DNA of 64,000 nt, from contig JANJGN010000385.1 in assembly GCA_026770705.1 (NCBI GenBank), forward strand, positions 310,001-374,000, in the 5' to 3' direction. Source of the stretch: Isurus oxyrinchus. Its lineage: Eukaryota. Positions within the stretch are counted from its first letter, which is position 1, and every line of letters begins with the position of its first letter. Both the position numbers and the translations under genes were made by a program. The notes beneath the pieces were generated by a model. It made no database searches and was not told the DNA's origin. It saw only the letters and a list, made by a program, of their open reading frames with translations. Positions 4,940 to 49,805 of the stretch are shown piece after piece.

Positions 4940-5079
4940 TCAAACAGTCTGTCGACTTCCTTTCACTGTTTGTTCCTCCCAGACACAGACTCCAGCGATA
5001 GTGATAACCACAGCCACAAGGAATATCACAGCTCGTATTCCCAGGATCAGGATCACGTGCAGAATCTCTCCTCCACTGT
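4940..5079 (-). CDS. Gene A terminal exon: transmembrane segment with intramembrane Arg and short tail (activating type)
   Basis: Acceptor ttctctag|, phase 1. Reads SGGEILHVILILGIRAVIFLVAVVITIAGVCVWEEQTVKGSRQTV* with no Tyr. Not in the ORF track. Confidence 0.8.
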
Positions 5080-6761
5080 CTAGAGAACACACAGAAAGAA
5101 ATCATCACTGACTCTCCGCTTTCAATCTCTCACTCTGGCTGAACAATCAAGCTTCATATCACTGCAACATTTGCTGTAATATTGAACCATCCACTGGGAT
5201 TCAATGTGGAATGAATGTTTTCATTGTAAACACTCTAAGAGTGGACAATCGGAACTTTCCCCTTAGCGTGGAACATTGGTGAGAATGGATCATTGTGCTG
5301 TTGGACTCCCTGTCCAATGTTTCTCTCCATCGCTGTGTACAGGATTGTGCTGTAGAAAATTCTGGAAACGTTTTGTGAAGGATGGAAATCCATCTCGGAC
5401 GCGTGTGCGAATCGGGCAGGATCGAGATGGACTCCCCCATGGACTTACACCCCCCGCTTAATAAACAGTTCCAATCTTTACCCAGAGAGAGGGGAGAATG
5501 TGGAACTCGCTCCCACTGGGAGGGGTTGAGGTGAACAGTATCGATGTATTTACGGGGCAGGAGGGTCAGTAACCAGAGGGACACAGATTGACGAACTGGA
5601 GGGGGAGATGAGGAGAATTTGTTTTGACAGAGCAAGTTGTTGTGATCTGGAAGGTGCTGCCTGAAAGGGCGGTGGAAGCAGATTCAATAGGAACTTTCAA
5701 AAGGGGAATTGGATAAACACTTGAAGGAGGAAGATGGGGTAAAGTGGAGTGATGGTTAGTGGATCTGATGGGATAGAACATTGAAAGACCTGGCACAGGC
5801 ACAATGGGCTGAATGGCCTCCTCCTGTGCTGTATCATTCTCCGCTTCCATGATCTCTCCCCCAGTCAGTAACCACTCCAGATCCCTCTTGAAGGCAACAG
5901 AGAAACAGCAACCACCACACCCACAGACAGCACATTCTCGAGGATCACTGCTCTCTGGGAAAAGATGAACTCCCCAACATCCAGCCTATTCCTGCTTCCC
6001 GGAGAGTGTAAACCCTTCAGGGAGGCGCTGAGGAAGTTTTCAATAAAATGACATCAAATCTATCGTTTGAGAAATAATTGAATTCCGATGAACTCACAGC
6101 TTGTGAGGCAAACTGGGAAGTGGATTTGCTTGAAAAGCTGAGAGATGCAAGGGTTAAGTTCTACTGTGCACCACTGGTGGTACAGTGTAACTACAGCGTG
6201 ACGTTTACATAGGCAATCCCTATTATAAACAAGGACATTGGACATCAGGTGAAATAAGGGCAGTGGAAAAGTGAGAACATGATGTAAGCTTTTCACCAAC
6301 AGGAATTCCCTTCCTAAACCTCTCCACCTCTCTCTTACTCTCAGATACTCAAACAAAATTTCACACAGATTCACGTAAGGAGGAGTTGGGACAATTGACT
6401 GGTCAAAGGGTTAGGTTTCAGGAAGCTTCTTAAAGTAGGATAGAGAGTTGGAGAGACAGAGAGTATCTGTGAGTGTCTCTATGCATCTGAGTGTCTGTAA
6501 TAGACTTTGCAATTTCCATATTCTTCCATAAACATGAAAGGGAACAGAAATCTCAGAATCCAGGTCAACTCTCCGGTGCAGCACTGAGGGAGGTCAGGTA
6601 ACCCGCTGGGGAGTATTGTGCTAGTGTGTTTGTTTGTGTCTTTGTGTGTGCTCATATACGAGGGATTGTGTATCTGCAGGTGTCTATTTAGGTCTGTATA
6701 TTTGTGTGTGTTTGTGTCATGTTTCAATCTGAGACAGATGATGAAATCTGTGTGCACTCAC

Positions 6762-6914
6762 ATTCCACAGTGATGGTTATGAATCCCTCCACTGCTCCAT
6801 GTTCATTCTCTGCCAAACACTGATAGTCTCCAGTGTCCCTGGATTTAACGTGAGGAATCACCAACCACAGCTCATTGTTGGAACTTGTTCTGTTCATTGT
6901 GATATTCAGATGTC
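6762..6914 (-). pseudogene. Gene A C2b exon remnant (3' half only, acceptor lost)
   Basis: Homologous to the 3' half of the intact exon at 61850-62131 (NRTSSNNELWLVIP...DTGDYQC..ENEHGAVEGFITITVE), donor retained. The 5' half is replaced by ~190 bp of unrelated sequence. Confidence 0.8.
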
Positions 6915-7225
6915 AGGGCAGGACTCAGCAAGACAGATTGCAGGTTTACCAACAGAAAGTGAACAATAATTTATATTTAAAGGGAAGAGAGTGCTGATAG
7001 ATTGGCAAGTGGTCTCGGAGGTGTTGCCATGGAAAATAATGTGTGTGAGATTTAAAGTTTAAACAGCTTGTCTCTTCATTCAGCAACAATCAAATAAAGA
7101 TCAATTAACTTCTATCGACTGTGAAGCTAATTGAGAGGCATGAGAATGTGGACACTGAGAACGGGCTGCACTGTCAGAGGGTCAGCGCTGAGGGAGTGCT
7201 GATGTAGAAGGATTTCTCAACTTAC

Positions 7226-7522
7226 CTTGTACAGTTAGTACGAGAGTCCGCTCCGATGAAACAGATGGATATCTCACTCTGCAGCTGAGAGTGTGTCCGT
7301 GGTGTTTGAGTGATGGGATCAGGGTCAGAACAGAAGTATGGGTCAGAGTGACACCATGCTGAGTTACAGTGTTTGAGACTGATCCACGTACGTCAGTGGG
7401 AGTGTCCCAGGTTAAGACAGGTGCTGCTGTTCCATTGCACGTTGTGTTGAAGGTGCAGCTTACATCCACACGCTTTCCTGCAATAATTTCAGCAGGGAAT
7501 ATCATGGGTTTATCTGTGAAAT
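7226..7522 (-). CDS. Gene A C2-set exon (C2a, Siglec domain 2)
   Basis: 297 nt, phase 1-1, ag/gt ends. FTDKPMIFPAEIIAGKRVDVSCTFNTTCNGTAAPVLTW...HGHTLSCRVRYP, with the extra Cys of Siglec domain 2. Confidence 0.9.
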
Positions 7523-8250
7523 CTAACAGACAGAGAATGGATCCTTTTAGAGAAATATAACGTGAAGCATCAGTTCAAATAGAAATCACAGTCCCACAAG
7601 AGAAAGCACTTTTACAAGGATGATATCAGAACTGAGAGATTACAATGATCAGGAGAGAATTTCCTGCTTTGAGACTTTGGTGTTTCTGTCTCTCAGCGTA
7701 ATACACGTTCACTCCGAGACACTTGAACTGATAATAGTGGGTGAGGGTGGAGGAGCAGACCAGAGTTTGGAGTGCACTACCCCATCATTCACTCAGTGAT
7801 CTGGGCCATTTAGTACTTTGCAATTTGTGGGAGCTAGCTGTGCGCAAATTGGCTGCTGTGTTTCTCACATTACAACAGTAACTACAATTCAGGAATCAGC
7901 TCATTGGCTGTGAAGTGACTTGGTACATATTGAGGTGGTGAAAGGCTCCATAGAAATGTGAATCTTTCTTTTGTCGATATGTCAGACTTCGAGACAGGAT
8001 TAGAGAGATCGATGGGAGTGGATAACCTGATAACATTGATGGACACAGTCAATACATTTAATCATTGATATTAAAGTGAGTATTAGAGGTTGCTTTAGGA
8101 CTGAACTGGAAGCTATCACCAGGTTATTGAGAATCAGACAGTGTGTTATAATAAGCTGTGTTTTGTGTTAATATGTAAACGTCACAGTTTGTGTTATTTC
8201 CCATTGAGTGTTGGATGTGAACTGTTGAGTAATTATAACACAGCACTTAC

Positions 8251-8619
8251 CAGAAACGTGAAGCCGGGTTACAGGGTAATAGTTATGGCTCGGACCATTG
8301 TCAAATTCTATTCTGAAAAAATAAGGTCCCGCATCTTCTCATCTGATGTTGTCTATGATCAAGGAACAGTCGCCATCTTTCAGGTCTCCAGACAGCCGGG
8401 TCCGATGGCAGAACCGTGGTAACTCGTGACTGTGATCCTTGGAGTGAAAGTCAATGGGAGCCCAGGGAATCTGTTTCTCATTATTAAACCAGACTCCACC
8501 TCGCGGTTGGTTTTCCAGACACGATGGATAACTGAAATGACATGGAATCTGTACACACGAACCTTCCTGTGCTGTCACCTCTCGTGGAGTGTCACCTTTC
8601 CACTCTTGTGACAGTCCAA
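8251..8619 (-). pseudogene. Gene A second V-set exon (V2) with in-frame stop
   Basis: 369 nt with splice sites intact. TGA at 8339-8341 (NIR*EDAGPYFFR), where the paralog at 41715 has TGG. Confidence 0.85.
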
Positions 8620-8684
8620 CTGGGGAGAGAAATATCAATATTTAACTCTGGATGGTTTGTGGATCCACTGAACCCGATATTTAC

Positions 8685-9480
8685 AGATGAGGCTGAATTG
8701 GGGGGATGGTCAATACTGAGGAGAATGGCAACAAATTATTTTGGCAGGAAGAATAGAAAAACAGGATATTATTTAAATGGAGACAGGCTGCAGAATGCAG
8801 TACAGAGGGATCTGGGTGTCCTTGTACATGAATCACAGAAAGTCAGCATTCAGGAACACCACAGAATGAGGAAGGCAAGTGGATTGTTGGCCTTTATTGC
8901 AAATGGATGGAGTATAAAAGGAGGGAAGTCTTGCAACAGCTGCACAGGGCGTTAGTGAGATTGTAACAGGATCATTGTGTACAGGCAGTTCAGAGAAACT
9001 TCACTGGGCTGATTCCTGGGATTAAAGGGTTTGTCCTGTGAGGAAATGTTGAGCAGGTTGGGCCTGTATCCATTGGAGTTTAGAAGAATGAGGGGTGACC
9101 TTATTGAAACATATCCGATTCCGAGGGGGCTTGACAGGGTGGATGCTGGGAGGATGTTTCCCCCTCGTGGGGGAATCTAGAACCAGGAAGCACAGTTTCG
9201 GAATGAGTGCTCTCCCATTTAAGACTGAGATGAGGAGGAATTTCCTCTCTCAGAGGGATGCTAGCCTGTGGAATTCTCTTCCCCAGAGAGCAGTGGAGGC
9301 TGGGCCATTGAATGGACTCAAGGCTGAGTGAGGCAGGTTTTTGATCGACAAAGGAGTCAAGGGTTTGGGGGACAGGCAGGAAAATGGAGTTAAGGCCACA
9401 ACCAGATCAGTGAGAGCAGGCTCGAGGGGCCGAATGGCCTGCTCCTGTCCCTATTTCTTATGTTCCTACATTCTTACCTT
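8685..9480 (+). mobile_element. CR1-like LINE 3' fragment
   Basis: QRDLGVLVHESQK...FKTEMRRNFLSQR...LWNSLPQRAVEA. Mirrored at ~40830-41655. Confidence 0.8.
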
Positions 9481-9999
9481 CTTAAAATATTAAAGCAGTA
9501 GAATAAACATGCAAGTGAATGACCCGCTCGACCCACCTTCCATCTGGGGGTCCCATGGGGAGGACCCTTCCTGAGCCAGATCCACCAGCCAACATGGTCT
9601 GGATCCGAGCACAGGAGACACGGGGGGGAGTGACTAACAGGCTCCTTGTGACAGGCCCCGTCTGTCCAATGGCTGGCTTTCAGCTGCCAAGGCCAGAGTG
9701 GTCCTTGCTAAAACCAGCTCAGGACAGGTCAGGACCCCTGTGCAGACCCCCTCCAGCGCTGCAGCCTCTGTACAAACCCCTCATGCGCTTATGGAGAGAC
9801 ACAAACAAGGCTGCACATTACCGAGGAGAATCCCCTCTACGGACTAAGGGGCTGACTCATCACCTTAAACTCAGCAAATGAGGAGGCTCTCGCTCGGTAT
9901 CGGGGCTTGGCATTCGCTCAATAAAAATAATCAAATTACATTTTGGTCAGAAATCTAAGGATGTTGTACATTCCCTCAAAAATAAGACTCAAGGCTGAA

Positions 10000-11530
10000 G
10001 GCACAACTGCCGATGTTGGAGTGATGGGATCGGGGGATGGTCAAGAGGCTTGGTTTGGAGGAGCGCAGAGACCTCAGAGGGTTGGAGTGACTGGAGGAGG
10101 TTACAGAGATAGGAAGGGTTGTACGGTCTGAAAAAGTTAAGAGAGATTGGGAGAGTGTAGGGTCTGGAGGAGATTACAGAGACAGTGAGGGTTGTAGTGA
10201 TTGGAGGAGTTACAGAGATAGCGAGGGTTGTAGCGGCTGGAAAAGTTAAGAGAGATTGGGAGAGTGTCGGGTCTGGAGGAGTTTGCAGAGGTCGGGAGGG
10301 TTGTAGTGACTGGGGCAGGTTACAGGGGCAGGGAAAGTTGTCGGGACTGGAGCAGGCTACAGAGATAGGGAAGCTTTTAGGGGCATGAGGAAGTTACAGA
10401 AATAGGGAGGTTTGTAGTGGCTGGAGGAGGTTGCAGAGATTGGTAGGTTTGTTGGGCAGGATGAATTTACAGATATAGGGAAGCGTTAGATACTTCAAGA
10501 GGTTACAGAGAATGGGATGGTTGTAGGTACTGGAGGAGGACGAGGAGATTACAGGGATAGAGAGGAAACAAAGATGAAAATTTGGACATTGAGACTTTGC
10601 TTGACCAGGAGCCAGTCTCGGTCATCGAGCAGAGCGGGTGATAAGGGAATGGGACTTGGTGTGAGTAAGGACGTGGTCAGCAGTTTTGGATGGCCTCAAG
10701 TTTATGGAGTGTAGACCGTGTGTTGGAACAGTCGAGACTGGAGGTAATGAAGGCGTGGATGAGGGTTTCAGCAGCAGATGAGCTGAGACAGGGTGAAGTC
10801 TTGCGATGTTACGGAGGTGGAAATAGACGGTATTAGTGAGGGCACAGATATGAGGCCGGAAGCTCATCTCAGGATCAAATGGGACAACAAAGCTGTGAAC
10901 AGATTGGCTTCAATCTCAGAGAGCTGCCAGGGAGAGGAATGGAGTTGGTAGCGAGGGAACAGAGTTTGGAGCGGGGAATGAAGGCAATGGTTTCAGTCTT
11001 TCCAATATTTAATTGGAGGGAATTTCTGCCCATCCAGTACTGGATGTCGGATAAGCAGCCTGATAATTTAGCAGCAGTGGAGGAGTCGAGAGAGGTGGCG
11101 GTGAGGTAGAGCTGGGGATCCTCAGTGGACAGGTGAAAACTAACACTGTTCAGATGATGCTGCAAAGCCATTGCAAGTGATTCTCTGGCTACGATGAGAT
11201 GGATAAGAATGGAGCCAGGGGAGAGCAGTCCCACCCAGCTGGACGACAGTGGAGAGGTGTTGGAGGAGGATGGTGTGGTCGAGCGTGTCAAAGGCTGCAG
11301 ACAGATCGAGAAGGACGAGGAGGGAAAGTTGACCTTTGTCACAGTCACACAGGATGCCATTTGTGACCTTGATAAGAGCTGTTTCAGCACAGTGGCTGGG
11401 GTGGGAACCTGATTGGAGGGATTCAAACATGGAGTTCCGGGAAAGATGGGAACGGATTCGGGAGATGGAAACACGTTCAAGGACTTTGGAGGTGAAAGAG
11501 AGGCTGGAGATGGGACGGGGGTTTACACGG
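10000..11530 (-). mobile_element. L2-like LINE RT fragment with internal ~38-bp purine-rich tandem repeat (10080-10560)
   Basis: RPISSLSFTSKVLE...QSG..P.HCAETALIKVTNGIL...LVLLDLSAAFDTLDH, an L2-clade RT. Mirrored at ~38650-40070. Confidence 0.8.
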
Positions 11531-11794
11531 ACAGTGTGAAGGGTGGAAGGTGTAGTGGGGAGGAGACACGTCACTCAGGGGGGAGGTGTCATCACCCCTC
11601 AGCTCGGTTTACCTTACAGCTATGATGTGGATTCAATCACACACAATAAGCTCATGGATCTGGGAGCAGAAATAGACAAATCATTAAAAATAGTGACGCT
11701 GGTTAACACGGCCAAAAAACAAGCAAATCAAACACTATTATTTCCCATTGAGTGTTGAATGTGAATTGTTGAGTAATTATAACACAGCACTTAC

Positions 11795-12172
11795 CAGAAA
11801 CGTGAAGCTGGGTTACAGGGTAATAGTTATGGCTCGGACCATTGTCAAATTCTATTCTGAAAAAATAAGGTCCTGCATCTTCCCGTCTGATGTTGTTTAT
11901 AATCAGGGAACAGTCGCCATCTTTCAGGTCTCCAGACAGCCGGGTCCGATGGTCGAACCGTGGTAACTCGCGACTGTGATCCTTGGAGTGAAAGGCTATA
12001 GACCATTTAAACCATTTGTTCTGTCTGTCCCTCCTCATATACCAGATTCCGACATGTGTTTTCTTTACCAAATGTGATGGGTAACTGTGATGACATGGAA
12101 TCTGTACACACGAACCTTCCTGCGCTGTCATCTCTCGTGGAGAGTCACCTTTCCACTCTTGTGACAGTACAA
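11795..12172 (-). CDS. Gene A first V-set exon (V1), Siglec-type
   Basis: 378 nt, open, phase 1-1. CVQIPC...VGIWY...GDLKDGDCSLIINNIRREDAGPYFFRIE, essential Arg present. Confidence 0.9.
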
Positions 12173-12802
12173 CTGGGGAGAGAAATATCAATATTTAACT
12201 CTGGATGGTTTGTAGATCCACTAGACTCGATATCCACCCCCTCCATCACTGTGGCACAGTGGCTGCAGTGTGGACCATCTGCAGGACACACAAGGAAGTC
12301 CACAAGGTATCACAATGGATGGAAGAGAATCCTGGACACAGGAGTGGACAAGTTCATTCTACATTGGCTCATGGTCCTCAGGACCCTGTTTGTGCACAAG
12401 CCTTGCTATCCAACAGAACTGAAGTTGGGGAAAATCCATTTAGAATTCCACTGTCCTGGGAATTGTCCTAACTTGCTGAGTTTGTTTTAAATCTAACATC
12501 TATTTTTGGTCTGTTGCCTTAAAAGGAGTGTAACTGGGAGTCAGGTTAATTAGGAATTTTAGGAGTTATTATAGCTGTCATTGTAGTCTTATGTATGTGC
12601 TTGAAATCTTTTATTTTGATGACAAATATTTTAATTTATTTTTTTAAATCTCTAAAGGTCTTGGTGTAATTATTGCTTCTGAATTCAGTGCACACATCTC
12701 ATAATAAATACAAATTGCAAATTCATTATGATCGTGTGACCACCTTTCTCTCATGGACTTGGTCTGCCTGGCACACATCACCTGCCAAGTGATAACACTG
12801 TT

Positions 12803-14112
12803 GTAATATGCCTTTCAGGGATAGCAGCATGACATCACTCAAGGGGAAGTGTGTCATGTGATTTTTCAGAACTGGGCTTGGCTTAAGGAAGTTCTCTGTG
12901 TATTTGTGTGTGTTAGGCATAACGTATATCTGTAAGTTGAAGTTTAGTTTGTATTTCTGTATTTGGGTGTTTTGAAAAGGGGGAACATGAGTTTTGGTTT
13001 CACTTTGGAAGAAGCCGCCTGTCTAATGAGTTTTTATGACTCTTGAAGGGAAGTCAAAACAAACACAAGGTAGAAGAAACTGTGCTGTTGCCTAGTAACA
13101 GTGATCCAGAGGGAAAGACCCACAGAGACCGAGAAAAACAGAAAAATACTTTCAGTTCTGTTGAAAGGAGTTGCCAGGAGAAGCAGCAAAGGAGCGGGAC
13201 AGATAGTCAGTCCCAAAGTAAAGATGAAGCCAAAACCATCGAGTGGAACAGGAGAATGGGCCCAAGAAAACCTTCTAGTCAAATCTGGGAAAGGCCCTGT
13301 TAAGTGAAGTTAAGAGTGAGGAACAGAAGAAGGCTCCAAACATAAAGGGAGAAAGCAGCAGGACACAGACCTAAAGCAAAATAGGCTTGCGAGAAGCCAG
13401 AAGATCCTAGGAGACACCACAGGTTGGTGACTCATTACTACGGCCATGTGAAGCCATGGTGTTCCATTGACACGGCTGAGCATTGGAGAGACAGGGCGTG
13501 GAAGGAAGGCTGAATGCACGTGGCGATCCAGGGGGCAGGAACATGGGAAGGAGAGTTTGAAATAGTGAAAGTGGACCCTTGTGGAAGGTGTCTGAGTGAA
13601 AGTGTCATGTTGGAGAAGATTCCAAAGCGAGTTCTTGGAGAGTGGAGATTGGAAACCCTCATATGGATATCTCAGTTCAGTGAGACTGGTTGGCTCACAG
13701 TGTAACAAGCGTCTGGGGTCTGATGAGGAGGGAGACATAGCATTTGTTCCAAGTGGGTTCTGTCAGTTTCTTTCAGAATGTGGTGTCCCTGACCCCAGGT
13801 CGTCTATTGGTTTACATCGACTGTGCACTTAGTGTGAACATGAGAGTATAAGATAGCTATTGTAACTTGTGTTCTACTTATGAATCTGCAAAGGTATAGG
13901 TCTGGGTGAAGGAGTAATGTAATATAGTTTGTCGTTCCTAGTTTAATAAATGTTTTATTCTTTAGTTAGAAGTTCATCAGATGACTCCTGTGACTCTGTT
14001 CAGTAGCCGCACTCCACATTCAAAAATAAAAAATAAAAGTTAGGACCTATCAAGCTGAGTTCCACCCTGGTATCTGACTTGCCCAGTAGTAACATCAGCT
14101 GGGATGATAACA
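12803..14112 (+). mobile_element. Putative solo LTR
   Basis: TGTAAT...GATAACA termini, AATAAA near the 3' end, non-coding. Mirrored at ~36070-37375. No clear TSD. Confidence 0.45.
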
Positions 14113-19183: not shown

Positions 19184-19223
19184 CTTGGAGAAGTGACAGG
19201 AGGAAGTAAGATTTCCCGATCAT
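19184..19223 (-). CDS. Gene A leader exon
   Basis: MIGKSYFLLSLLQ + G|gtaat, intact. Confidence 0.85.
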
Positions 19224-20049: not shown

Positions 20050-20355
20050 TGAGAGTCCTGCACAGTCGGAGAGTCAGTACTGAGGGAGTGTTGCACTGTT
20101 GGACGGTCAGCACTGACTTAGTGCTGCACTGTCGGAGGTTCTGTACTGCGAGTGTTGCACTCTGGGTGTGCCAGTACTGAAGGAGTGCTGCACTGTCAGA
20201 TGGTCAATGCTGAGGGAGCGCTACACTTTTCAAGCATCAGCACTTAGGGGCTGCTGCACTATCAGGGGGTCATGACTAAGGGACCACTGCACAGTCGGAG
20301 GGTCCGTACCCAGGGAATGCTGCACTGTCGCAGGCTCAGTACCGAGGGAGTGCAA
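20050..20355 (+). repeat. Degenerate 33-bp minisatellite
   Basis: Same unit as 2615-3592. Confidence 0.75.
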
Positions 20356-22885: not shown

Positions 22886-22892
22886 TTTAATG

Positions 22893-31845: not shown

Positions 31846-32067
31846 AATGATAACAGGGGTCGTTGAAATGTATCATACGGCCCGAGACCTGTATTGGGGA
31901 CTCTATCGCCTGAGTTTCAGCCTCTGTGGTGAGGGGGAGGAGTCTAATCCCACGGAGCCAATGGAGAAGCTTCATGACTACAGCTGCCCAAATATGAGCT
32001 GACAGATCACACATGGTAAACGTTTTGCTGAGAGCACAAAACATCCTCGATCTTCTCACTGATTACC

Positions 32068-32658: not shown

Positions 32659-32698
32659 ATGATCGGGAAATCCTACTTCCTCCTGTCACTTCTCGAAG
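32659..32698 (+). CDS. Gene C leader exon
   Basis: MIGKSYFLLSLLE + G|gtaat. Joined to V1 it gives MIGKSYFLLSLLEVGLS|QEWKG, a plausible signal peptide. Confidence 0.85.
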
Positions 32699-37998: not shown

Positions 37999-38376
37999 TT
38001 GGACTGTCACAAGAGTGGAAAGGTGAAACTCCACGACAGGTGACAGCGCAGGAAGGTTCGTGTGTCCAGATTCCATGTAACTACAGTTATCCAGCACGTG
38101 TAGTACGGAGAGCACGTGTCGGAATCTGGTACGTGAAATGGTACACATGGAATACAAGGTCTAGAGGGACTATAGCTTTTCACTCCAAGGATCACAATCG
38201 CGAGTTAACACGGTTCCGCAATAGGACACGGCTGTCTGGAGACCTGAAAGATGGCGACTGTTCCCTGATTATAAACAACATCAGACGGGAAGATGCACAT
38301 TATTATTATTTCAGAATAGAATTTGACAGCAGCAATAGTTACAGCTACTATCCTGCAACCCAGCTTCACCTTTCTG
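37999..38376 (+). CDS. Gene C V-set exon V1 (sialic-acid-binding Arg present)
   Basis: 378 nt, ccccag|...|gtaagt, open. CVQIPC...DCSL...YYYFRIE. Confidence 0.9.
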
Positions 38377-41300
38377 GTAAGTGCTGTGTTATAATTACTC
38401 AACAATTCACATTCAACACTCAATGGGAAATAATAGTGTTTGATTTGCTTGTTTTTTGGCCGTGTTAACCAGCATCACTATTTTTAATGATTTGTCTATT
38501 TCTGCTCCCAGATCCATGAGCTTATTGTGTGTGATTGAATCCACATCATAGCTGTAACGTAAACCGAGCTGAGGGATGATGACACTTCCCCCCTGAGTGA
38601 AGTGTCTCCTCCCCACTACACCTTCCACCCCTCACACTGTCCGTGTAAACCCCCGTCCCATCTCCAGCCTCTCGTTCCCCTCCAAAGTCCTTGAACGTGT
38701 TTCCATTTCCCGAATCCATTCCCATCTTTCCCGGAACTCCATGTTTGAATCCCTCCAATCAGGTTCCCACCCCAGCCACTGTGCTGAAACAGCTCTTATC
38801 AAGGTCACAAATGGCATCCTGTGTGACTGTGACAAAGGTCAACTTTCCCTCCTCGTCCTTCTCGATCTGTCTGCAGCCTTTGACACGCTCGACCACACCA
38901 TCCTCCTCCAACCCCTCTCCACTGTGGTCCAGCTGGGTGGGACTGCTCTCCCCTGGCTCCATTCTTATCCATCTCATCGTAGCCAGAGAATCACTTGCAA
39001 TGGCTTTGCAGCATCATCTGAACAGTGTTAGTTTTCACCTGTCCACTGAGGATCCCCAGCTCTACCTCACCACCACCTCTCTCGACTCCTCCACTGCTGC
39101 TAAATTATCAGGCTGCTTATCCGACATCCAGTACTGGATGGGCAGAAATTCCCTCCAATTAAATATTGGAAAGACTGAGGCCATTGTCTTCATTCCCCGC
39201 TCCAAACTCTGTTCCCTCGCTACCAACTCCATTCCACTCCCTGGCAGCTCTCTGAGATTGAAGCCAATCTGTTCACAGCTTTGTTGTCCCATTTGATCCT
39301 GAGATGAGCTTCCGGCCTCATATCTGCACCCTCACTAACACCGTCTATTTCCACCTGCGTAACATCGCACGACGTCACCCTGTCTCAGCTCATCTGCTGC
39401 TGAAACCCTCATCCACGCCTTCATTACCTCCAGACTCGACTGTTCCAACACACGCTCTACACTCCATAAACTTGAGGCCATCCAAAACTGCTGACCACAT
39501 CCTTACTCACACCAAGTCCCGTTCCCTTATCACCCACTCTGCTCGATGACCGAGACTGGCTCCTGGTCAAGCAAAGTCGCAATGTCCAAATTTTCATCTT
39601 TGTTTCCGCACTATCCCTGTAATCTCCTCATCCTCCTACAGTACCTACAACACTCCCTATCTCTGTAACCTCTTCAATTGTCTACAACCATCCCATTCTC
39701 TGTTACCTCTTCAAGCTCCTATCACTTCCCTATAGCTGTAAATTCATCCTGCCCAACAAACCTACCAATCTCTGCAACCTCCTCCAGCCACTACAACCCT
39801 CCCTATTTCTGTAACTTCCTCCTGCCCCTAAAAGCTTCCCTATCTCTGTAGCCTGCTCCAGTCCCGACAACTTTCCCTGCCCCTGTAACCTGCCCCAGTC
39901 ACTACAACCTTCCTTCTCTCTGTAACCTCCTCCAGCCCCTCCAACCCTCTGAGGTCTCTGTGCTCATCCAATTCCAGCCTCTTGACCATCCGCCGATCCC
40001 ATCACTCCAACATCAGCGTCCATGCCTTCAGCTGCCTGGGGCCCGAGCTCTGTAATACCCTCCCTCAACCCCTCTCCATCCCTCTCTCTCACTCTCTCTA
40101 TCTCTCTCTCTCTGTCTCTTTGTCTCTTTCTCTCTGTCTCTCCACAACACCGAACTCTTCTGGTCAGCTGTTCCTAATATCTCCACACGTGTCTGGGTGA
40201 CATACTTTGTTTTATGACGCTCCTGTGTAGCACCTTGGGGTGATTTGTCATGTTCAAGTTGTTGTGTAAATATAAGTTGTTGCCCTTTGACCCTTGACCC
40301 CAGCTTGAGTCTTATTTTTGACGGAATGTACATCCTCCTTAGATTTCTGACCAAAATGTCATTTGATTATTTTTATTGAGCGAATGCCAAGCCCCGATAC
40401 CGAGCGAGAGCCTCCTCATTTGCTGAGTTTAAGGTGATGAGTCAGCCCCTTAGTCTGTAGAGGGGATTCTCCTCGGTAATGTGCAGCCTTGTTTGTGTCT
40501 CTCCACAAGCGCATGAGGGGTTTGTACAGAGGCTGCAGCGCTGGAGGGGGTCTGCACAGGGGTCCTGGCCTGTCCTGAGCCGGTTTTAGCAAGGTCCACT
40601 CTGGCCTTGGCAGCTGAAAGCCAGCCATTGGACAGACGGGGCCTGTCACAAGGAGCCTGTTAGTCACTACCCCCCCCGTGTCTCCTGTGCTCGGATCCAG
40701 ACCATGTTGGCTGGTGGATCTGGCTCAGGAAGGGTCCTCCCCATGGGACCCCCTGATGGAAGGTGGGTCGAGCGGGTCAGTCACTTGCATGTTTATTCTG
40801 CAGCTTTAATATTTTAAGAAGGTAAGAATGTAGGAACATAAGAAATAGGGACAGGAGCAGGCCATTCGGCCCCTTGAGCCTGCTCTCACTGATCTGGTTG
40901 TGGCCTTAACTCCATTTTCCTGCCTGACACAAACCCTTGACTCCCTTGTCGATCAAAAACCTGCCTCACTCAGCCTTGAGTCTATTCAATGGCCCAGCCT
41001 CCACTGCTCTCTGGGGAAGAGAATTCCACAGGCTAGCACCCCTCTGAGAGAGGAAATTCCTCCTCATCTCAGTCTTAAATGGGAGAGCCCTCATTCCGAA
41101 ACTGTGCTCCCTGGTTCTAGATTCCCCCACGAGGGGGAAACATCCTCCCAGCATCCACCCTGTCAAGCCCCCTCGGAATCGGATATGTTTCAATAAGGTC
41201 ACCACTCATTCTTCTAAACTCCAATGGATACAGGCCCAACCTGCTCAACATTTCCTCACAGGACAAACCCCTTAATCCCAGGAATCAGCCCAGTGAACCT

Positions 41301-41714
41301 CCTCTGGACTGCGTTCAATGCAGAGTCTATCCCTCCCTAAGTAAGGAGACCAGAACTGTACACACTGCTCCTGATACAATCTCACCCTGTGCAGCTGTTG
41401 CAAGTCTTCCCTCCTTTTATACTCCATCCCTTTGCAATAAAGGCCAACATTCCACTTGCCTTCCTCATTCCGTGGTGTTCCTGAATGCTGACTTTCTGTG
41501 ATTCATGTACAAGGACACCCAGATCCCTCTGTACTGCATTCTGCAGCCTGTCTCCATTTAAATAATATCCTGTTTTTCTATTCTTCCTGCCAAAATAATT
41601 TGTTGCCATTCTCCTCAGTATTGACCATCCCCCCAATTCAGCCTCATCTGTAAATATCGGTTTCAGTGGATCCACAAACCATCCAGAGTTAAATATTGAG
41701 ATTTCTCTCCCCAG

Positions 41715-42083
41715 ATGAACCCTCACAAGAGTGGAGAGGTGACATTCCACGAGAGGTGACAGCGCAGGAAGGTTCGTGTGTACAGATTCCATGTCATTAC
41801 AGTTATCCATCGTGTCTGGAAAACCAACCGCGAGGTGGAGTCTGGTTTAATAATGAGAAACAGATTCCCTGGGCTCCCATTGCCTTTCACTCCAAGGATC
41901 ACAGTCACGAGTTACCACGGTTCCGCCATCGGACCCGGCTGTCTGGAGACCTGAAAGATGGCGACTGTTCCCTGATTATAAACAACATCAGATGGGAAGA
42001 TGCAGGACCTTATTTTTTCAAGATAGAATTTGACAATGGTCCGAGCCATAACTATTACCCTGTAACCCAGCTTTACGTTTCTG
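41715..42083 (+). CDS. Gene C V-set exon V2 (essential Arg->Lys, extra Cys)
   Basis: 369 nt, open, phase 1-1. Begins (D)EPSQEW, contains YPSCLE and YFFKIE. Confidence 0.85.
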
Positions 42084-42896
42084 GTAAGTGCTGTGTTATA
42101 ATTACTCAACAATTCACATTCAACACTCAATGGGAAATAACACAAACTGTGATGTTTACATATTAACACAAAACACAGCTTATTATAACACACTGTCTGA
42201 TTCTCAATAACCTGGTGATAGCTTCCAGTTCAGTCCTAAAGCAACCTTTAATACTCACTTTAATATCAATGATTAAATGTATTGACTGTGTCCATCAATG
42301 TTATCAGGATATCCACTCCCATCGATCTCCGTAACCCTGTTTGACAGTCTTACATATCGACAAAAGAAAGATTCGCATTTCTATAGCACCTTTCAACATC
42401 TCTGTACGTCACAAATGGATTCACAACCAATGAAATAATTCTTGAAATGTAGCCCTTGTTGTAATATGGGAAACACAGCAGCCAATTTATTCACAGCAAG
42501 CTCCCAGAAACAGCTATGTGATCAATAACCTGATCATCTGCTTTTGATGCCGGTTCAGTGATTGGTTCAAATGGATTCTCTCCTGCTGGGGACAGGATAG
42601 AATTTAAATCTGGCAGATTTCGGAGAAAGTAACAAGCCAGTGTGCCAGGAACTGTGAGCTGCTCCCCCACCCTCACCTGGGATTGTCAATTCAATTGTCT
42701 CAAAGTGGAAATGAATTCATCTGAGTGACAGAAACTCCACTAAGTCTGAAAATAGGAAATTCTCTCCTGATCGTTGTAACCTCTCAGTTCTGATATCATC
42801 CTTGTAAAAGTGCTTTCTCTTGTGGGACTGTGATTTCTATTTGAACTGATGCTTCACATTATATTTCTCTAAAAGGATCCATTCTCTGTCTGTTAG

Positions 42897-43193
42897 ATTT
42901 CACAGATAAACCCACGATATTCCCTGCTGAAATTATTGCAGGAAAGCGTGTGGATGTAAGCTGCACCTTCAACACAACGTGCAATGGAACAGCAGCACCT
43001 GTCTTAACCTGGGACACTCCCACTGACGTGCCTGGATCAGTCTCAAACACTGTAACTCAGCATGGTGTCACTCTGACCTATACTTCTGTTCTGACCCTGA
43101 CCCCATCACTCAAACACCACGGACACACTCTCAGCTGCAGAGTGAGATATCCATCTGTTTCATCAGAGCGGACCCTCGTACTAACTGTACAAT
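42897..43193 (+). CDS. Gene C C2a exon
   Basis: 297 nt, open, ttag|...T|gtaagt. Confidence 0.9.
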
Positions 43194-43390
43194 GTAAGTA
43201 TGGACACCCTTCATTCTATATTAGCGGTATTAGGATATAATGTGCTGGGCAAGATCCCACAAACTTCACTGGGTTGAAGACAAAACTGGTCCTTTTTTAA
43301 TGAGTGATATTGAGCAGGGAGAGCTGTTCCTTGTATTGACCCTTGGGATTGTTTATCCCAACCTGATAGGGCAGAGGGGGCCCAGGTTGT

Positions 43391-43457
43391 GACTATCAGT
43401 GTGTGGCAGAGAATGAACATGGAGCAGTGGAGGGGTTCATAACCATCACTGTGGAAT
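43391..43457 (+). pseudogene. Gene C C2b exon remnant (last ~67 nt only)
   Basis: DYQCVAENEHGAVEGFITITVE + donor. The breakpoint differs from genes A/B. Confidence 0.8.
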
Positions 43458-43469
43458 GTGAGTGTGGAG

Positions 43470-43783
43470 ATACATTTGTTTGGTTGTTGTCTCCGTGGTC
43501 TCCGTGGAGCCATTGGGATCGTGTTGTTTTTAATCCAGTTTTCTTCAATCCTCGCTCAGTCCACGTTATCCACACATCCAATTTTTCCTCTCCCTTTCTG
43601 TTTTTGCTCTCAGTTTCTCCTTCAATGGTTGTGAGGACAAGGCTGTCAGGTCTTCGTTTCCAATCTCCGTACTTGATGAACTTTCTCTCTCTAACTGCCC
43701 TGAACAACCCTTTTAATTGCTGAACATCTCCTCTTGATCTAAGCCACTCATTGGTCTTTCTGTCCATCCAGCTGATTCTGAGC
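43470..43783 (-). mobile_element. RTE-like LINE 3' fragment
   Basis: MLRISWMDRKTNE...RERK..YG.WKRRPDSLVLTTIEG resembles the RTE ORF C-terminus. Confidence 0.6.
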
Positions 43784-44840
43784 ATCTGGCAGCATCTGTG
43801 GAGAGAAAGACAGGGTTAGCGTTTGGAGTCTGTATGACTCTTCTTCAGAGCTAAAGGGAAGTAGACATGTGGTGAAATATATCCTGTCCAAGGGGGGGCG
43901 ATGGGACAGGTGGAGCTGGATAGAAAACCAGCGATAGGTGGAGGCAATGGAGAGATTGTGGAAGATGTCATAAACAAAAGGTCAAAGGGTTGTTAACAGT
44001 GGTGGTATTGGATAAAGGAGGTGCTAATGGTGACATTAAGCAGAGTGTGATAATGGGCGGACCAGGGTAAGCACTCTGGAAAGAGACAGATGGCCCTCGT
44101 GGGGGTGTGGCAGGGGGAGGGGACGGTGGAGGGAATAAAGATCGAAAATAGACTAAAATCTGTGGATAAAACAATCAATAAAAATGGAAATGAATTTCAA
44201 ATAATAATAATAAAAATAAGGGGAAAACAGTTAACAAAAAATACAATTAAAATGAATACATAAAAAAGGGTTCAAAAAGCAGTGAAGATCGAGGAGCGAG
44301 TTCGTGATCTGAAATTGTTGAACTCAATATTCAGTCGGGAAGGCTGTAAAGTGCCAGGTCGGAAGATGAGGTGCTGTTCCTCCAGTTTGTGTTGGGCTTC
44401 ACTGGAACAATGCAGCAGGCCAAGGACGGACATGTGGGCATGAGAGCAGGGTGGGGTGTTAAAATGGCAAGCGACAGGGAGGTCTGGGTCATGCTTGTGG
44501 ACAGACCGAAGGTGTTCATCAGAGCGAACACCCAGTCTGCGTTTGGTCTGTCCCATGTAGAGGAGACCACATTGGGAGCAGTGAATGCAGTAGATTAAAT
44601 TGAAGGAAGTGTACATGAAGCGCTGCTTCACCTGGAAGGAGTGTTTGGGTCATTGGACAGTGAGGGGGGAGGAAGTAAAGGGGCAGGTGTTGCACCTTCT
44701 GTAAATGCATGGGAAGATGTCATCGGAGAGGGTTGAGGTGCTAGGGGTGATGGAGGAGTGGACCAGGGTGTCCTGGAGGGAATGATCCCTGTGGAATGCC
44801 AACGGGGTGGGAGTGAAGGAAAGATGCTTTTGATGGTGGT
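43783..44840 (-). mobile_element. Penelope-like retroelement 3' part with GIY-YIG endonuclease
   Basis: ORF 44272-44631: NLIYCIHCSQCGLLYMGQTKRRL..R..EH...PVACHFN...LEEQHLIF..GTLQP..LN. Confidence 0.85.
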
Positions 44841-44984
44841 CACATTTTGTCCGAAGGAGGTGAGAAATGAGGGAGGGAATTCCAGAGGTTAGGATCCAGG
44901 CAGCTGAAGGCACGGCTGCCAATGGTGGAGCGATAGGAATCGGGGGAAGGTCAAGAGGCTGGAATTGGAGGTGCATCGAGATCT

Positions 44985-45510
44985 CGGAGGGTTGTAGAGG
45001 CTGGAGGAGTTTACAGAGATAAGGAAGGTTATAGGGGCTGGAGGAGGTTACAGAGATAGGGAGGGTTGTAGGGGCTGGAGGAGGTTACAGAGATAGGGAG
45101 TGTTGTAGGGGCTGGATGAGGTTACAGAGATAGTGAGGGTTGAAGGGTCTGGAGGAGGTTACAGAGATAGGGAGGGTTGTAGAGGCTGGAGGAGTTTACA
45201 GAGATAGGGAGGGTTGTGGGGGCTGGAGGAGGTTACAGAGTTAGGGAGGGTTGTGGGGGCTGGAGGAGGTTACAGAGGTAGAGAGGGTTGTGGGGGCTGG
45301 AGGAGGTTACATAGATAGGGAGGGGTGTAGGGATGGAAGGTGGTTGCGGAGTTAGCGAGTTTTATATGGGCTGTAGGAGGTTACAGGGATAGGGACGGTT
45401 GTGGGGGTTGGAGGAGGTTACAGAGATAGGGAGGGTTATAGGTGCTGAAGGAGGTAACAGAGATAGGGAGGGTTATAGGGGCTGGAGGAGGTAACAGAGA
45501 TAGGGAGGGG
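44985..45510 (+). repeat. ~37-38-bp minisatellite (GGCTGGAGGAGGTTACAGAGATAGGGAGGGTTGTAGG)n inside an L2-like 3' fragment
   Basis: Tandem units directly visible. Confidence 0.85.
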
Positions 45511-45803
45511 GTAAGGAGGGATTTGAAACGATGTGAATTTTAAAATTGTGGCATTGTCGGACCGGGAGCCAGTGTAGCTCAGTGACCAACAGGGAGTGAT
45601 GTGTGAGTTAGGACATGGGGACAGCAGAGTTTAGGATGAGCTGATGTTTATGGAGAGTGAAAGATGGGAGGTCGGGCAGGAGAGTGTTGGGATAGTTGAG
45701 TGCAGAGGTAACAAAGGCAGGAATGAGTGTTTCAGTGTGAAGATTCTATCTTACGCTCTAACTTTGCTATGACGTTGTCTCATTGTTGTCCTTCCCTCCT
45801 CAG

Positions 45804-46097
45804 ATAAGCCGGAGATTTCCCAGCAGTCGGAGTGCACTCGGAGATCAGAGGGGGTCACCTGCGTCTGTGTGGCCACCTCCAACCCACCGGGAGACCTCAC
45901 CTGGCACCTGCCCAGTGCCAACATCAGTGGTAACCAAACACACGGAGATTTTGTGTCGTGGCAGGTCAGAGATGGGCATCTGGTGACTGGTTCCCTCACT
46001 CTGATGAGACCCCAGGATGAGGGGGGAGTGATTGCATCCTGCTCGGTTCAAAACCCACACGGGGAAGCCATGTTCAAGGTGTATCTGTGGGTCAAAG
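45804..46097 (+). CDS. Gene C membrane-proximal C2 exon (C2c)
   Basis: 294 nt, phase 1-1. KPEISQQSECTRRSEGVTCVCVATSNPPGDLTW...SCSVQNPHGEAMFKVYLWVK. The C-x8-CxC pattern resembles MAG domain 5 and the last domain of Siglec-5/10/11. Confidence 0.85.
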
Positions 46098-46448
46098 GTG
46101 AGAGACTCGCTCAGGTTCGATCTCCACTCAGCTGGATTGATCCCTAAACTCGAGAATTCCCTCCCTCAACCTCTCCACCTCTCTCTCTACCTCCTCTAAG
46201 ATGCTGTGTACAACTTCCCCCTTTGACCAAGCTTTGAATCACCTGACCTCATGTGACAATGGCAACACTTGGTCAAATTGGAGCCAGGCCGTTCAGGGGG
46301 TGATGTCAGGAAGCACTTCTTCACACAAAGGGGAGTGGAAATCTGGAACCCTCTCCCCCAGATAAGCTGCTTCATTGGGTGCAAGACAGAAAGCTTTGAC
46401 AAAATGTCCTTTCTCAGCAATACTCAGGTTCTCCCCCCAAACGACTAA

Positions 46449-46740
46449 ATATTATATATAAACATTACATAGATTACATCGAGAAACATTATATATAAAT
46501 ATTACATAGATTACATCGAGAAACATTATATATAAATATTACATAGATTACATCGAGAAATATTATATATAAATATTACATAGATTACATTGATAAATAT
46601 TATATATAAATATTACATAGATTACATCGAGAAAAATTATATATAAATGTTACATATATTACATTGCTAAATATTATACATTAATGTTATAGGGATCACA
46701 TTGATAAATATATATAAATGTTAAATTGATTACATCGAAA
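46449..46740 (+). repeat. AT-rich ~37-bp tandem repeat (ATTATATATAAATATTACATAGATTACATCGAGAAAC)n
   Basis: Directly visible. Confidence 0.85.
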
Positions 46741-47236
46741 TGCAAGACTCGATAACCAATGAAGCAGTTTCGAAGTGAGCTCACTGTTGTCATGTAGGAA
46801 ACGCAACAGTTGATTTGTACACAGCAAGATCCCACAAACAACAGCGTGCAATTGAGGTGATAATTGATTATTTTAGTGAGGTTATTTGATACATATATAT
46901 ATAGAAATTACATATATAATGTGGGTCACTAATGACCCTTAAGGGAGGGAAACCTGTCCATTTTAACAGGTCTGGGTGTATATGTGACTCCAGTCTCAGA
47001 CACCATCATGGTTAACTCTTACCTGCCCTCTGAACTGGTCTCCCAGTTTGGGACAAACCAGTGGTTCAGGAGGAAGACCCCCCACCACCATCTCAAGGGG
47101 AAACTAGGGATGGACAATAAATGTCAGCATTGCCCGAGAATGAGTATTTAAACACTGAGTGAGTGTATCGCTTCTCGAGATACATCGGAGCATCATTGTA
47201 AACCTGTAGTGCAGTAATTAATGACTGTTTTTACAG

Positions 47237-47333
47237 GTAGAGACTCCAGTAAATGGACAGTAGGATTGTTCACGGCTGGGATCATGTTGAGTGTTTTCCT
47301 GGCTGGAATCTTCATCTTCATCTGTGTGAGAAA
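47237..47333 (+). CDS. Gene C transmembrane exon (uncharged)
   Basis: ttacag|...AA|gtaagt. RDSSKWTVGLFTAGIMLSVFLAGIFIFICVRK, homologous to 63383-63479. Confidence 0.85.
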
Positions 47334-47499
47334 GTAAGTCTGAAGATTTAACTTGATTTTAATATAAACATTTGTTGAGGACTATTTGGACAGTTTTTAC
47401 AAAGGGCCAGCACGGGCACGATGGGCTGAGTGGCTTCCTCCTGAGCTGTGAGATTTTAAATTCTTTAATCAAATGTGACTGTCACTGGTGAGGCCGTTA

Positions 47500-47920
47500 T
47501 TAAATTGCCCATCCCTAATTGCCCCTTGAGAAGGTGGTGGTGAGCTGCCTTCTTGACCCGCTGCAGTCCATGTGGTGTAGGTACACCCACAGTGCTGTTA
47601 GAGAGGGAGTTCCAGGATTTTGACCCAGCGACAGTGAAGGAACGGTGATATATTTCCAAGTCAGGATGGTGAGTGACTTGGAGGGGAACTTCCAGGTGGT
47701 GGTGTTCCCATGTGTCTGCTGCCCTTGTCCTTCTAGATGGTAGAGGTCGTGGGTTTGGAAGGTGCTGTTGAAGGAGCCTTGCTGAGTTGCTGCAGTGCAT
47801 CTTGTAGATGTTACACACACTGCTGCCACTGTGTGTTCATGGTGGAGGGAGTGAATGTTTAATGTGGTGGATGGGGTGTAGATCAATCGAGCTGCTTTGT
47901 CCTGGATGGTGTCAAGCTTC
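47500..47920 (-). mobile_element. LINE 3' fragment; related copies at ~51400-52130 (+) and ~62160-63190 (-)
   Basis: KKLDTIQDKAARLI...HSLHH...SWNSL...VKKAAHHHLLKG, recurrent in the window. Confidence 0.7.
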
Positions 47921-48056
47921 TTGATTCTGTGCTTTGTGCAGATGTGATTTAAAGAGACAGTCCCAGTCATTGGTGTAAGTTACAGTGGGCTCTGTGTCTG
48001 TGCTGCACTGACTCTCTGCTATATGATAACCACAGTGTGATATTGTGTTATTGCAG

Positions 48057-48138
48057 GAGAAAGACAGCGATGGAGGAGAGAGTTTCAGGGACCAGTGACA
48101 TTGTATTGACTCCCAGTCCACTCTCTGTGAAGCACCAG
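48057..48138 (+). CDS. Gene C cytoplasmic exon 1
   Basis: ttgcag|, phase 2-0, links TM and last exon in frame: RKTAMEERVSGTSDIVLTPSPLSVKHQ|gtacag. Confidence 0.7.
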
Positions 48139-48273
48139 GTACAGGAGCTGTTTACACTCACTCCAAAGCTTCAATCTCAGTGTGTAGACAACACATGTCC
48201 CAGATTCCCAGCCCAGTTACCCACTGATTTGTACCTGTGGAGTCAGCAATGGTTCAGTATCATGCTGTCTCTC

Positions 48274-49025
48274 TATTATGACACAGCAACTGGTAAAGGC
48301 TGTTGTTTAAAATCCGAGAGGAAACTTTAAACAACTGTCATAACCTATATTTCCCAGTGGAATGTTTGAGATGCAGCTCTAAATTCAGGAATAAGAGCAC
48401 CAGTTCTCGACATCGGTGTTATATCAAACTACATGAGACATTTATTAATTTACACAAGTTAAACATATGCACATGGCTACAAGCGAGTATTATCATAACT
48501 TTTTAACAAATTCCCAAACTAATCTCCTCTAAGATAACCCATAGAATTTAAGCAGACACCCAGGCAAAGCATTTTCACCTCACAAATTCCAAATGAGGTT
48601 CCTTTCACTTTGGTTCCTTTGCAGACAGGTGTAGGCTTACAGCTGCTTTGATGTTACAAGCCTCTGCTCTGCACACACAAAACTGCTCAAGTTATACCCA
48701 GTGCTTCTCTTTGAATGTAAATTCTCATTGTATCATCAGGACCTTTGATCTCCATCTCTTCTAACAATAAATCCTCTGTCATAGTATCAATTTTATCAAC
48801 AAAATAAATGTTGATTGGTTTAAGATTTCACTCTCAGGCTTTGAATACTCTGTTTAAAAATACAAATTTTTATCTCTCAGTTTACATCTCAACACTACTA
48901 TACATCAAATACCCAGACTGGCTGGCTTTAATCCAATTAAAACACACACAGACACACCCACAGACTAAACCTCTTCTTAAATAGACAATTTCCAATTACA
49001 TTACATACATTAAAAGATTCATAAC
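48274..49025. mobile_element. Solo LTR-like element
   Basis: T.TTATGA...TCATAACA inverted termini. Clearly related to 53818-54645. Confidence 0.6.
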
Positions 49026-49043
49026 ACTCTGTCTCTGTCCCTT

Positions 49044-49075
<32 letters not shown>

Positions 49076-49164
49076 ATCCTCTCTGATTACAAGATTCATG
49101 TTATTGAGCCTCAGACCAGGCACCTGAGTGCAGAAACCAAGCCGTCACTCACCAGAGCCATTAC

Positions 49165-49412
49165 CGAGGGAGTGCGGGACTGACAGTGGGTCAGCACTGA
49201 GGGAGTGCCGCACTGTCGGAGGGTCAGTACTGAGGGAGTGCTGCATTGTCGGAGGGTCAGTACTGAGGGAGTGCTGCACTGACAGAGGGTCAGTACTGAG
49301 GGAGTGCCGCACTGTCGGAGGGTCAGTACTGAGGGAGTGCTGCACTGTCGGAGGGTCAGTACTGAGGAAGTACTGCACTATCAGAGGGTCAGTACTGAGG
49401 GAGCACTGCACT
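49165..49412 (+). repeat. 33-bp minisatellite amplified inside a SINE-like body
   Basis: Units followed by GGTGGTTTCTTTCAGATGA...TTAAACC, resembling my recollection of the DeuSINE core. Confidence 0.75.
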
Positions 49413-49556
49413 GCCATAGGTGGTTTCTTTCAGATGACATGAGGGAGGATTAAACCCACTGAGCCACGACTGACACTAACGACGCTGCACAATAATTTAA
49501 CCCTATCAGTGCCAGTAAATGATGTGAGGATGTCTTCTGTTTCCATTTCTCTGTAG

Positions 49557-49805
49557 GGTAAACAGAACGTGCTGATTACTGAGCCCCGGAACACAACCAG
49601 AGATACAACTAGCGAGGGGGAGACCCCAGCTCCCCGGGGACTTTCTGAATGTGCAGTGGGAGGTGATGCTGGACATGGGAACCCTGAGAATCCCGCGGAC
49701 TTTCTCTACGCCAATCCCCAAGTCTTCAGGGTGCCCAGTGGTGATGGGTCTGTCCACAGGGAAGAGGAGACGGAATACGCACAGATCAGATTCAAGCGAA
49801 ACTGA
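49557..49805 (+). CDS. Gene C terminal cytoplasmic exon with degenerate ITIM (FLYANP) and ITSM (TEYAQI)
   Basis: ctgtag|, phase 0. ...NPADFLYANPQVFRVPSGDGSVHREEETEYAQIRFKRN*, the two-Tyr layout of CD33-related Siglecs. Confidence 0.85.
   Translation, partial: GKQNVLITEPRNTTRDTTSEGETPAPRGLSECAVGGDAGHGNPENPADFLYANPQVFRVPSGDGSVHREEETEYAQIRFKRN

Follow-up and report, generated by a model that had tools for sequence, protein, structure and literature searches.

A Siglec-like gene cluster of Isurus oxyrinchus in which one 5' half carries an inhibitory-type and a probable activating-type ending

We analysed a 64,000-nucleotide (nt) stretch of DNA from Isurus oxyrinchus (NCBI GenBank assembly GCA_026770705.1, contig JANJGN010000385.1, positions 310,001 to 374,000 of the forward strand), hereafter called the window. 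Self-comparison, stop-to-stop translation, Pfam scans and alignment with shark homologues identified four Siglec-like genes (A to D) and the leader of a fifth. Gene A runs on the minus strand from 19223 to 4940, followed on the plus strand by gene B (24864 to 29423), gene C (32659 to 49805) and gene D, which starts at 55732 and runs off the window. The window contains 5 leader exons (MIGKSYFLLSLLQ), 6 Siglec-type V-set exons, 4 C2a exons and 1 C2c exon, together with C2b exons or remnants, two kinds of uncharged membrane exon and two copies of a membrane exon encoding an arginine. All immunoglobulin (Ig) exons of the cluster are of phase 1-1. The joined spliced models described below were checked locally for their reading frame only, and homology searches were done exon by exon. 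The analysis centres on genes A and C, which have the same 5' half and different 3' ends. The exons of gene A, in the order in which they are read, are as follows.

19184–19223, minus strand: leader exon (MIGKSYFLLSLLQ), open frame with a phase-1 donor, GTAA.
11795–12172, minus strand: V1 exon, a Siglec-type V-set (Pfam V-set 4.9e-13, Ig_CD22 4e-10), reading FFRIEF with the key arginine kept.
8251–8619, minus strand: V2 exon with an in-frame TGA at 8339–8341; acceptor and donor as in intact copies.
7226–7522, minus strand: C2a exon, a C2-set like domain 2 of CD33 and MAG (Pfam C2-set_2 6.3e-10), with contig joints at both ends.
6763–6912, minus strand: C2b remnant, 3' part only, with an upstream in-frame stop (homologue alignment).
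4940–5079, minus strand: last exon, with an arginine buried in the membrane segment (LGIRAV), a tail of 12 residues that has no tyrosine, and a stop.

Translation of the last exon of gene A ended in ILHVILILGIRAVIFLVAVVITIAGVCVW followed by EEQTVKGSRQTV and the stop codon, the longer membrane part reading SGGEILHVILILGIRAVIFLVAVVITIAGVCVW. This agrees with an earlier note on this DNA, which had described an arginine-bearing transmembrane segment and a tyrosine-free tail of about 12 residues. Upstream of this ending, the V2 exon keeps the key arginine (FFRIEF) yet holds a stop: the codon at 8339–8341 is TGA, where gene C has TGG and the other copies have CGG. Since the acceptor and donor of V2 match those of intact copies, inclusion of the exon is expected and the stop would be read. 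With an in-frame TGA in V2 and regular splice sites on either side, the most likely state of gene A in the assembled haplotype is that of a null or decaying copy. Splicing probably leaves out the C2b remnant.

Gene C forms an open model of 601 codons; its eight exons agree in phase and have canonical splice sites throughout.

32659–32698, plus strand: leader exon (MIGKSYFLLSLLE).
37999–38376, plus strand: V1 exon, a Siglec-type V-set reading YYFRIEF (Pfam; sialoadhesin 3e-15, Siglec-5, MAG, CD33).
41715–42083, plus strand: V2 exon, a V-set reading FFKIEF, with lysine instead of arginine at the key site (Pfam, alignment of V exons).
42897–43193, plus strand: C2a exon (Pfam; solved-structure matches).
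45804–46097, plus strand: C2c exon, the membrane-proximal C2-set (best solved match MAG domain 5, 1.9e-11).
47237–47333, plus strand: membrane exon, uncharged (WTVGLFTAGIMLSVFLAGIFIFICV), placed by homologues.
48057–48138, plus strand: first cytoplasmic exon.
49557–49805, plus strand: last exon with FLYANP, TEYAQI (TxYxxI) and the stop at 49803–49805.

Gene C is an intact gene for an inhibitory-type receptor with the layout V1-V2-C2a-C2c-membrane-tail, and its signalling is predicted from the tail. At the ITIM (immunoreceptor tyrosine-based inhibitory motif) position, this tail reads FLYANP, a degenerate form of the LLYANI, LLYASI or ILYANI found in relatives, and only the TxYxxI motif is canonical. 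The uncharged membrane segment and the immunoreceptor tyrosine-based switch motif (ITSM) that the earlier note assigned to gene C were thus found, at 47237–47333 and in TEYAQI, next to an ITIM position that has degenerated. An open stretch near 47960–48050 is not the membrane exon. We rejected the open stretch 47953–48327 for this role, as it mixes intron with the first cytoplasmic exon and homologues place the membrane exon at 47237–47333.

Comparison of the two genes revealed an inverted duplication of about 8.7 kb that comprises most of intron 1, V1, V2 and C2a. In the self-comparison, 7824–15963 (minus) paired with 34206–42510 (plus) at about 93% identity, and the C2a exons matched as well. 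Identity between A and C was distributed as follows.

Leader: DNA 95%.
Intron 1, shared part: DNA 95%.
V1: DNA 83%, protein 73%.
V1–V2 intron: DNA 93%.
V2: DNA 95%, protein 90%.
C2a: DNA 97%, protein 96%.

The introns were 94–98% identical in most 300-nt windows. The description of the block as near-identical therefore holds for the introns, V2 and C2a (93–97% DNA identity) and fails for V1, the membrane-distal domain, which is its least conserved part; A and C cannot be said to have the same ectodomain. V1 differed at 64 of 378 nt (P about 2e-17 under a 5% background), the changes being concentrated in the middle of the domain and directly behind the key arginine. Since the synonymous divergence of V1 (0.25) far exceeds the divergence of the introns, the two V1 exons are of different ancestry. 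The 3' part of the gene A V1 exon was 97–99% identical to the V exons of B and D and to the V2 exon of C, compared with 86% to the V1 exon of C, and the central segment was different in every copy. Positive selection was considered as the sole cause of the V1 divergence and rejected: the ratio of nonsynonymous to synonymous divergence (dN/dS) was 0.59, the synonymous divergence lay well above that of the introns, and patchwise replacement fits better. The pattern points to exchange with other family members and not to homogenisation between A and C. We propose that patches of V1 in both A and C were replaced by sequence from other members of the family, which would mean that the two genes no longer share a binding domain.

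The relationship changes at the 3' side of C2a, where gene A tracks B and not C: 4919–7773 matched 26589–29444 at 91.5%, and gene A goes from matching C best to matching B best within C2a or just past it. We therefore hypothesize that a segmental duplication, combined with recombination in or just after C2a, set one 5' half (leader, long intron 1, V1, V2 and C2a) on two 3' ends. An inverted copy of a tandem array would account for the order of genes on the two strands. The unit of this array would have been a leader, the intron-1 element, V1, V2, C2a, the C2b remnant and the arginine exon, with one member, C, having an inhibitory-type 3' end.

Retroelement-like sequences lie in two introns. 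Intron 1 of gene A carries about 2 kb (15963–18004) that has no counterpart in C, where the flanking sequences are about 180 nt apart (34023–34206). This segment and its surroundings contain retroelement-like open stretches on both strands, to which Pfam gave no identity. The label "Gypsy" given earlier to the intron-1 element could not be upheld: Pfam scans of 17 open stretches gave no support for a Gypsy identity, the only match being to an integrase core below threshold (E 0.026), and the RVT_1 match belongs to a separate fragment in the V1–V2 intron. That fragment (Pfam RVT_1, 5.5e-9), which resembles a long interspersed nuclear element, lies at 38597–39028 (plus) with a copy at 11143–11574 (minus). 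Its presence in both A and C indicates that it is older than the duplication.

The arginine exon, on which the earlier proposal of a paired system depends, is kept in related species. The ILILGIRA motif followed by the short VKGS(RQTV) tail recurred in three models from the catshark Scyliorhinus torazame and one from the bamboo shark Chiloscyllium punctatum, with no change in the arginine or its neighbouring residues in any of the four (P0006, P0013, P0130 and P0157). One of the arginine-exon models is named pIgR-like. In P0130, a partial catshark model, C2a is read straight into the arginine membrane exon. A search with the last 50 residues of P0006 returned only one further arginine-exon model, P0157.

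Transcripts were examined using reads from four runs, presumed to be RNA and derived from two organisms, over 4800–8700. Three runs, from two organisms, contained a joint between 5079 and 7226 with GT..AG on the gene strand, which corresponds to the predicted C2a donor and arginine-exon acceptor. The same three runs contained the joint between 7522 and 8251 that links a V exon to C2a. In the fourth run, a 674-nt contig joined a full C2b exon to the arginine exon. Messages in which C2a is spliced to the arginine exon are expressed by this family. The splice expected for gene A was thus detected at the predicted sites in three runs, in contigs that differ from gene A and are probably from another copy or allele. 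Contig cover was very deep in the runs over a short minisatellite-like stretch at 7165–7201. In the organism-A run (X7), cover was deepest by a wide margin over the 3' part of C2b, which also ranked first in X18; this presumably reflects family members with many C2b repeats.

Membership of these genes in the Siglec family is well supported. The best solved-structure matches of the gene C V1 domain were sialoadhesin (3e-15), then Siglec-5, MAG, Siglec-10, CD33 and Siglec-8, and the Pfam V-set and Ig_CD22 matches exceeded their cut-offs. The FRIE motif of this domain aligned with FRFE of sialoadhesin, which contains the key sialic-acid-binding arginine, and its N-terminal Trp aligned with Trp2 of sialoadhesin. 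Every V exon reads FFR or YFR at the key arginine except the V2 exon of C (FFK). Every V exon also contains SCVQIPC and GDCSLII, the cysteine pattern of Siglec V-sets (a CxxxxC pair and the DCSL cysteine), and the cysteines would pair as in known Siglec structures. C2a, in its gene C copy, matched domain 2 of CD33, MAG, Siglec-10, Siglec-8 and Siglec-5; C2b matched C2-set residues 317–385 of MAG and residues 247–322 of Siglec-8; C2c had MAG domain 5 as its best solved match. Sialic acid binding is predicted from these features. The assignment is made at the level of the family; in the V1 ranking, sialoadhesin came before Siglec-5 and MAG.

The closest relatives are automated shark and ray gene models, headed by a great white shark model named CD33-like and a basking shark model named Siglec-12. 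Almost all of the best 150 relatives were non-mammalian. Together with the V-set matches, these relatives bear out the earlier suggestion of Siglec-like receptors in a cartilaginous fish. The named models are as follows.

Carcharodon carcharias: XP_041037179 (CD33-like).
Cetorhinus maximus: XP_078389734 (Siglec-12).
Scyliorhinus torazame: XP_072326180, XP_072325011 and XP_072326181.
Chiloscyllium punctatum: XP_072409577.

The shark models share with the window their leader, V, C2a, C2b and C2c exons as well as the types of membrane segment and tail. They differ in being unreviewed predictions named after mammalian proteins, and none has been described within an activating/inhibitory pair. Among the relatives from sharks and rays, proteins with 2 to 5 V-sets in tandem are frequent. 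The tail of the relatives (LxYAS[IV]...TEYxxI, for example LLYASI...TEYAQI) aligned with LHYASV...TEYSEI of a turtle protein. As a lead only, we take the shark tail to resemble the CD33-related type known from human Siglecs. A survey of Siglecs in fish reported that fish genomes are without CD33-related Siglecs and did not mention sharks or cartilaginous fish (PMC7226832).

Two further genes and one isolated leader complete the cluster.

24864–29423, plus strand: gene B, an arginine-exon pseudogene between A and C, with leader 24864–24903, V 25606–25980, C2a 26840–27136, C2b remnant about 27462–27647 and arginine exon 29284–29423.
55732–63479, plus strand: gene D, the fourth Siglec-like gene, which leaves the window, with leader 55732–55771, V 59313–59678, C2a 60709–61005, intact C2b 61850–62131 and membrane exon 63383–63479.
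1356–1395, minus strand: leader exon of a further gene, whose other exons lie beyond the window start.

Gene B is dead. It carries a TAA in the leader (24891–24893) and a TGA in the V exon (25623–25625), a conserved Trp of the V exon is changed to Cys, and the joined model stops at codons 10 and 20. The membrane exon of gene D (63383–63479, NEWKAGLLGAGICLSVGLSGFFIF) is uncharged and of a second type, which in the relatives P0014 and P0007 is followed by a different tyrosine-bearing tail; overall, the 3' ends of the cluster are of at least three kinds. Of the C2b exon, only the 3' part survives in A (6763–6912, minus), B (27462–27647, plus) and C (43391–43489, plus), with the least left in C.

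The leaders of the fifth gene, B and C have an upstream ATG (MKYL.../MEYL...) 22 nt before the ATG of the signal peptide and out of frame with it (1396–1417, minus, fifth gene; 24842–24863, plus, B; 32637–32658, plus, C), which the leaders of A and D do not have. This upstream ATG might dampen translation. The great white model XP_041037179 (P0028) starts at it; as this ATG and the signal peptide are in different frames in the window's leader copies, the first 20 residues of that model (MKYLGVDNDREILLPPVTSP) are probably a mis-annotation. Minisatellite arrays sit in the introns and intergenic stretches of the cluster and are common to duplicated copies. They have a unit of 33 nt (2509–3668, 20117–20386, 30826–31923, 49061–49492 and 61062–61823), 37 nt (10184–10553 and 44875–45614) or 43 nt (22875–24196), and may have aided unequal exchange. 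The assembly has a gap at 49994–50122.

Collectively, these results make it probable, in our judgement, that the window holds a fast-turnover (birth-and-death) cluster of Siglec-like genes from a lamniform-type shark, in which one 5' half has come to stand on inhibitory-type and activating-type endings. By analogy with known receptors, the arginine ending of gene A would pair with an adaptor carrying an ITAM (immunoreceptor tyrosine-based activation motif), such as DAP12 or FcR-gamma, and would then be predicted to signal in opposition to C. Several observations weigh against this account or limit what it says of gene A. Position 4974 was C instead of T in all four runs (changing EEQ to EGQ), which matches neither A nor B, and three of the four runs skipped or replaced the gene A stretch just past 4919, the organism-A run lacking exactly 4898–4918. 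Since 4974 and the 3' untranslated region differ from gene A, the transcripts probably stem from another copy or allele. None of the four runs contained gene A-specific variants over the region examined; gene A may nonetheless be transcribed. Skipping of V2, possible because all Ig exons are of phase 1-1, would leave an open frame of 284 codons encoding V1, C2a and the arginine membrane segment, and the TGA might be confined to the haplotype that was assembled; by either route gene A may still be functional. As to the status of A and C as a pair, gene conversion in human pairs homogenises the first two domains, and the ligand-binding domains are nearly identical (PMC4042635, PMC6288428). A and C lack both of these defining features.

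A rival reading is that A and C work as a ligand-matched pair in which gene A, through V2 skipping or a rare TGA allele, signals opposite to C. The common 5' half with its intact splice sites, the open V2-skipped frame, the existence of single-V relatives with a V-C2a layout (among them P0130, which runs C2a into the arginine exon), the C2a-to-arginine-exon splice in contigs and the key arginine kept in both V1 domains would all agree with such a pair. However, the V1 domains are only 73% identical in protein, the mismatches clustering mid-domain and directly behind the arginine; the normal splice sites of V2 lead one to expect its inclusion and hence the stop, so that the joined model with all exons ends at codon 233 of 407; transcripts bearing gene A's own variants were not seen in the four runs; and the ITIM position of C is degenerate. 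We regard a working pair as unlikely. Less likely still is that the arginine-containing form with its short tail is non-activating, serving as a decoy or as the partner of a membrane protein without an ITAM. The case for activation is drawn from sequence features only, and conservation of the 12-residue tail (E..VKGSRQTV) across species hints at a function beyond that of a tailless protein. Nevertheless, the usual hallmark of activating receptors that work through adaptors, among them Siglec-14 and Siglec-16, is a buried basic residue combined with a short tail that lacks tyrosine (PMC6288428, PMC4042635), and the unchanged arginine and neighbouring residues in the four models from the catshark and the bamboo shark also speak for adaptor coupling. 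That the inverted duplicate is an assembly artefact, for example a misjoined haplotype of a single gene, is very improbable. The region is rich in minisatellites and repeats, and the best DNA run contained only about half of the sampled words of 4900–8700. Yet the copies are 5–7% apart, show several indels, and have dissimilar V1 exons and 3' ends that differ altogether; a further leader exon comes after the minus-strand copy, in tandem order; and the family is organised in the same way in relatives from other sharks.

Returning to a birth-and-death cluster as the preferred account, what persists of the paired system proposed by the earlier note is one 5' half placed on an arginine ending and on a tyrosine-motif ending; the stop in V2 of gene A, the dissimilar V1 exons and the loss of gene B, the second arginine-exon gene, weaken the rest. 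Functional pairing of the two genes is at most putative, and the placement of one 5' half on two endings matches the way in which paired receptors arise. The view that any such pairing originated independently stands: because the A/C duplication is recent and lineage-specific, it would be independent of the mammalian pairs. More tentatively, and with more doubt than confidence, we suggest that cartilaginous fish evolved paired Siglecs independently, a movable arginine exon having repeatedly recombined onto inhibitory CD33-type ectodomains and the activating copies having soon been lost, with A and C as a young example. If true, both the "counter-trap" logic and the CD33-type tail would date to the base of the jawed vertebrates.

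Our literature searches found no description of paired Siglecs in sharks or other cartilaginous fish, and a search for ITAM adaptors found nothing on sharks. Paired Siglecs are so far known from mammals, and the shark cluster would make this receptor logic older or more convergent than thought. It would also show the same means at work, namely local duplication, recombination within genes and rapid loss of activating copies. The window genes offer constructs for asking whether receptors of an early-branching jawed vertebrate recognise sialic acid and use adaptors. Their value is limited in that automated models exist in several sharks, the activating copy is defective and function is predicted.

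Compared with the human pairs SIGLEC5/14 and SIGLEC11/16, the shark genes are likewise clustered receptors with a Siglec V-set, in which a gene with a tyrosine-motif tail has a neighbour with a basic membrane residue and a short tail. In both systems the 5' halves are related by recent DNA exchange, and the activating member is defective in the shark and often in humans, where null alleles of SIGLEC14 and SIGLEC16 are common (PMC6288428). They differ in that the shark V1 is the most divergent part of the block (73% protein identity), the introns being more alike, and in that A and C have two tandem V-sets, arose by a lineage-specific duplication and use adaptors by prediction. The cluster resembles CD33-related Siglecs and MAG in the key arginine of its V-sets, in C2a (similar to domain 2 of CD33 and MAG), in C2c (similar to domain 5 of MAG) and in the tail type of its relatives; unlike in CD33-related Siglecs, the ITIM position of gene C reads FLYANP. 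The KIR, LILR/PIR and PILR families and the teleost NITR and LITR families also combine inhibitory and activating members with common ectodomains, a basic residue that recruits an ITAM adaptor and frequent pseudogenes. The shark cluster follows the same birth-and-death logic as these families, built on a different ectodomain family.

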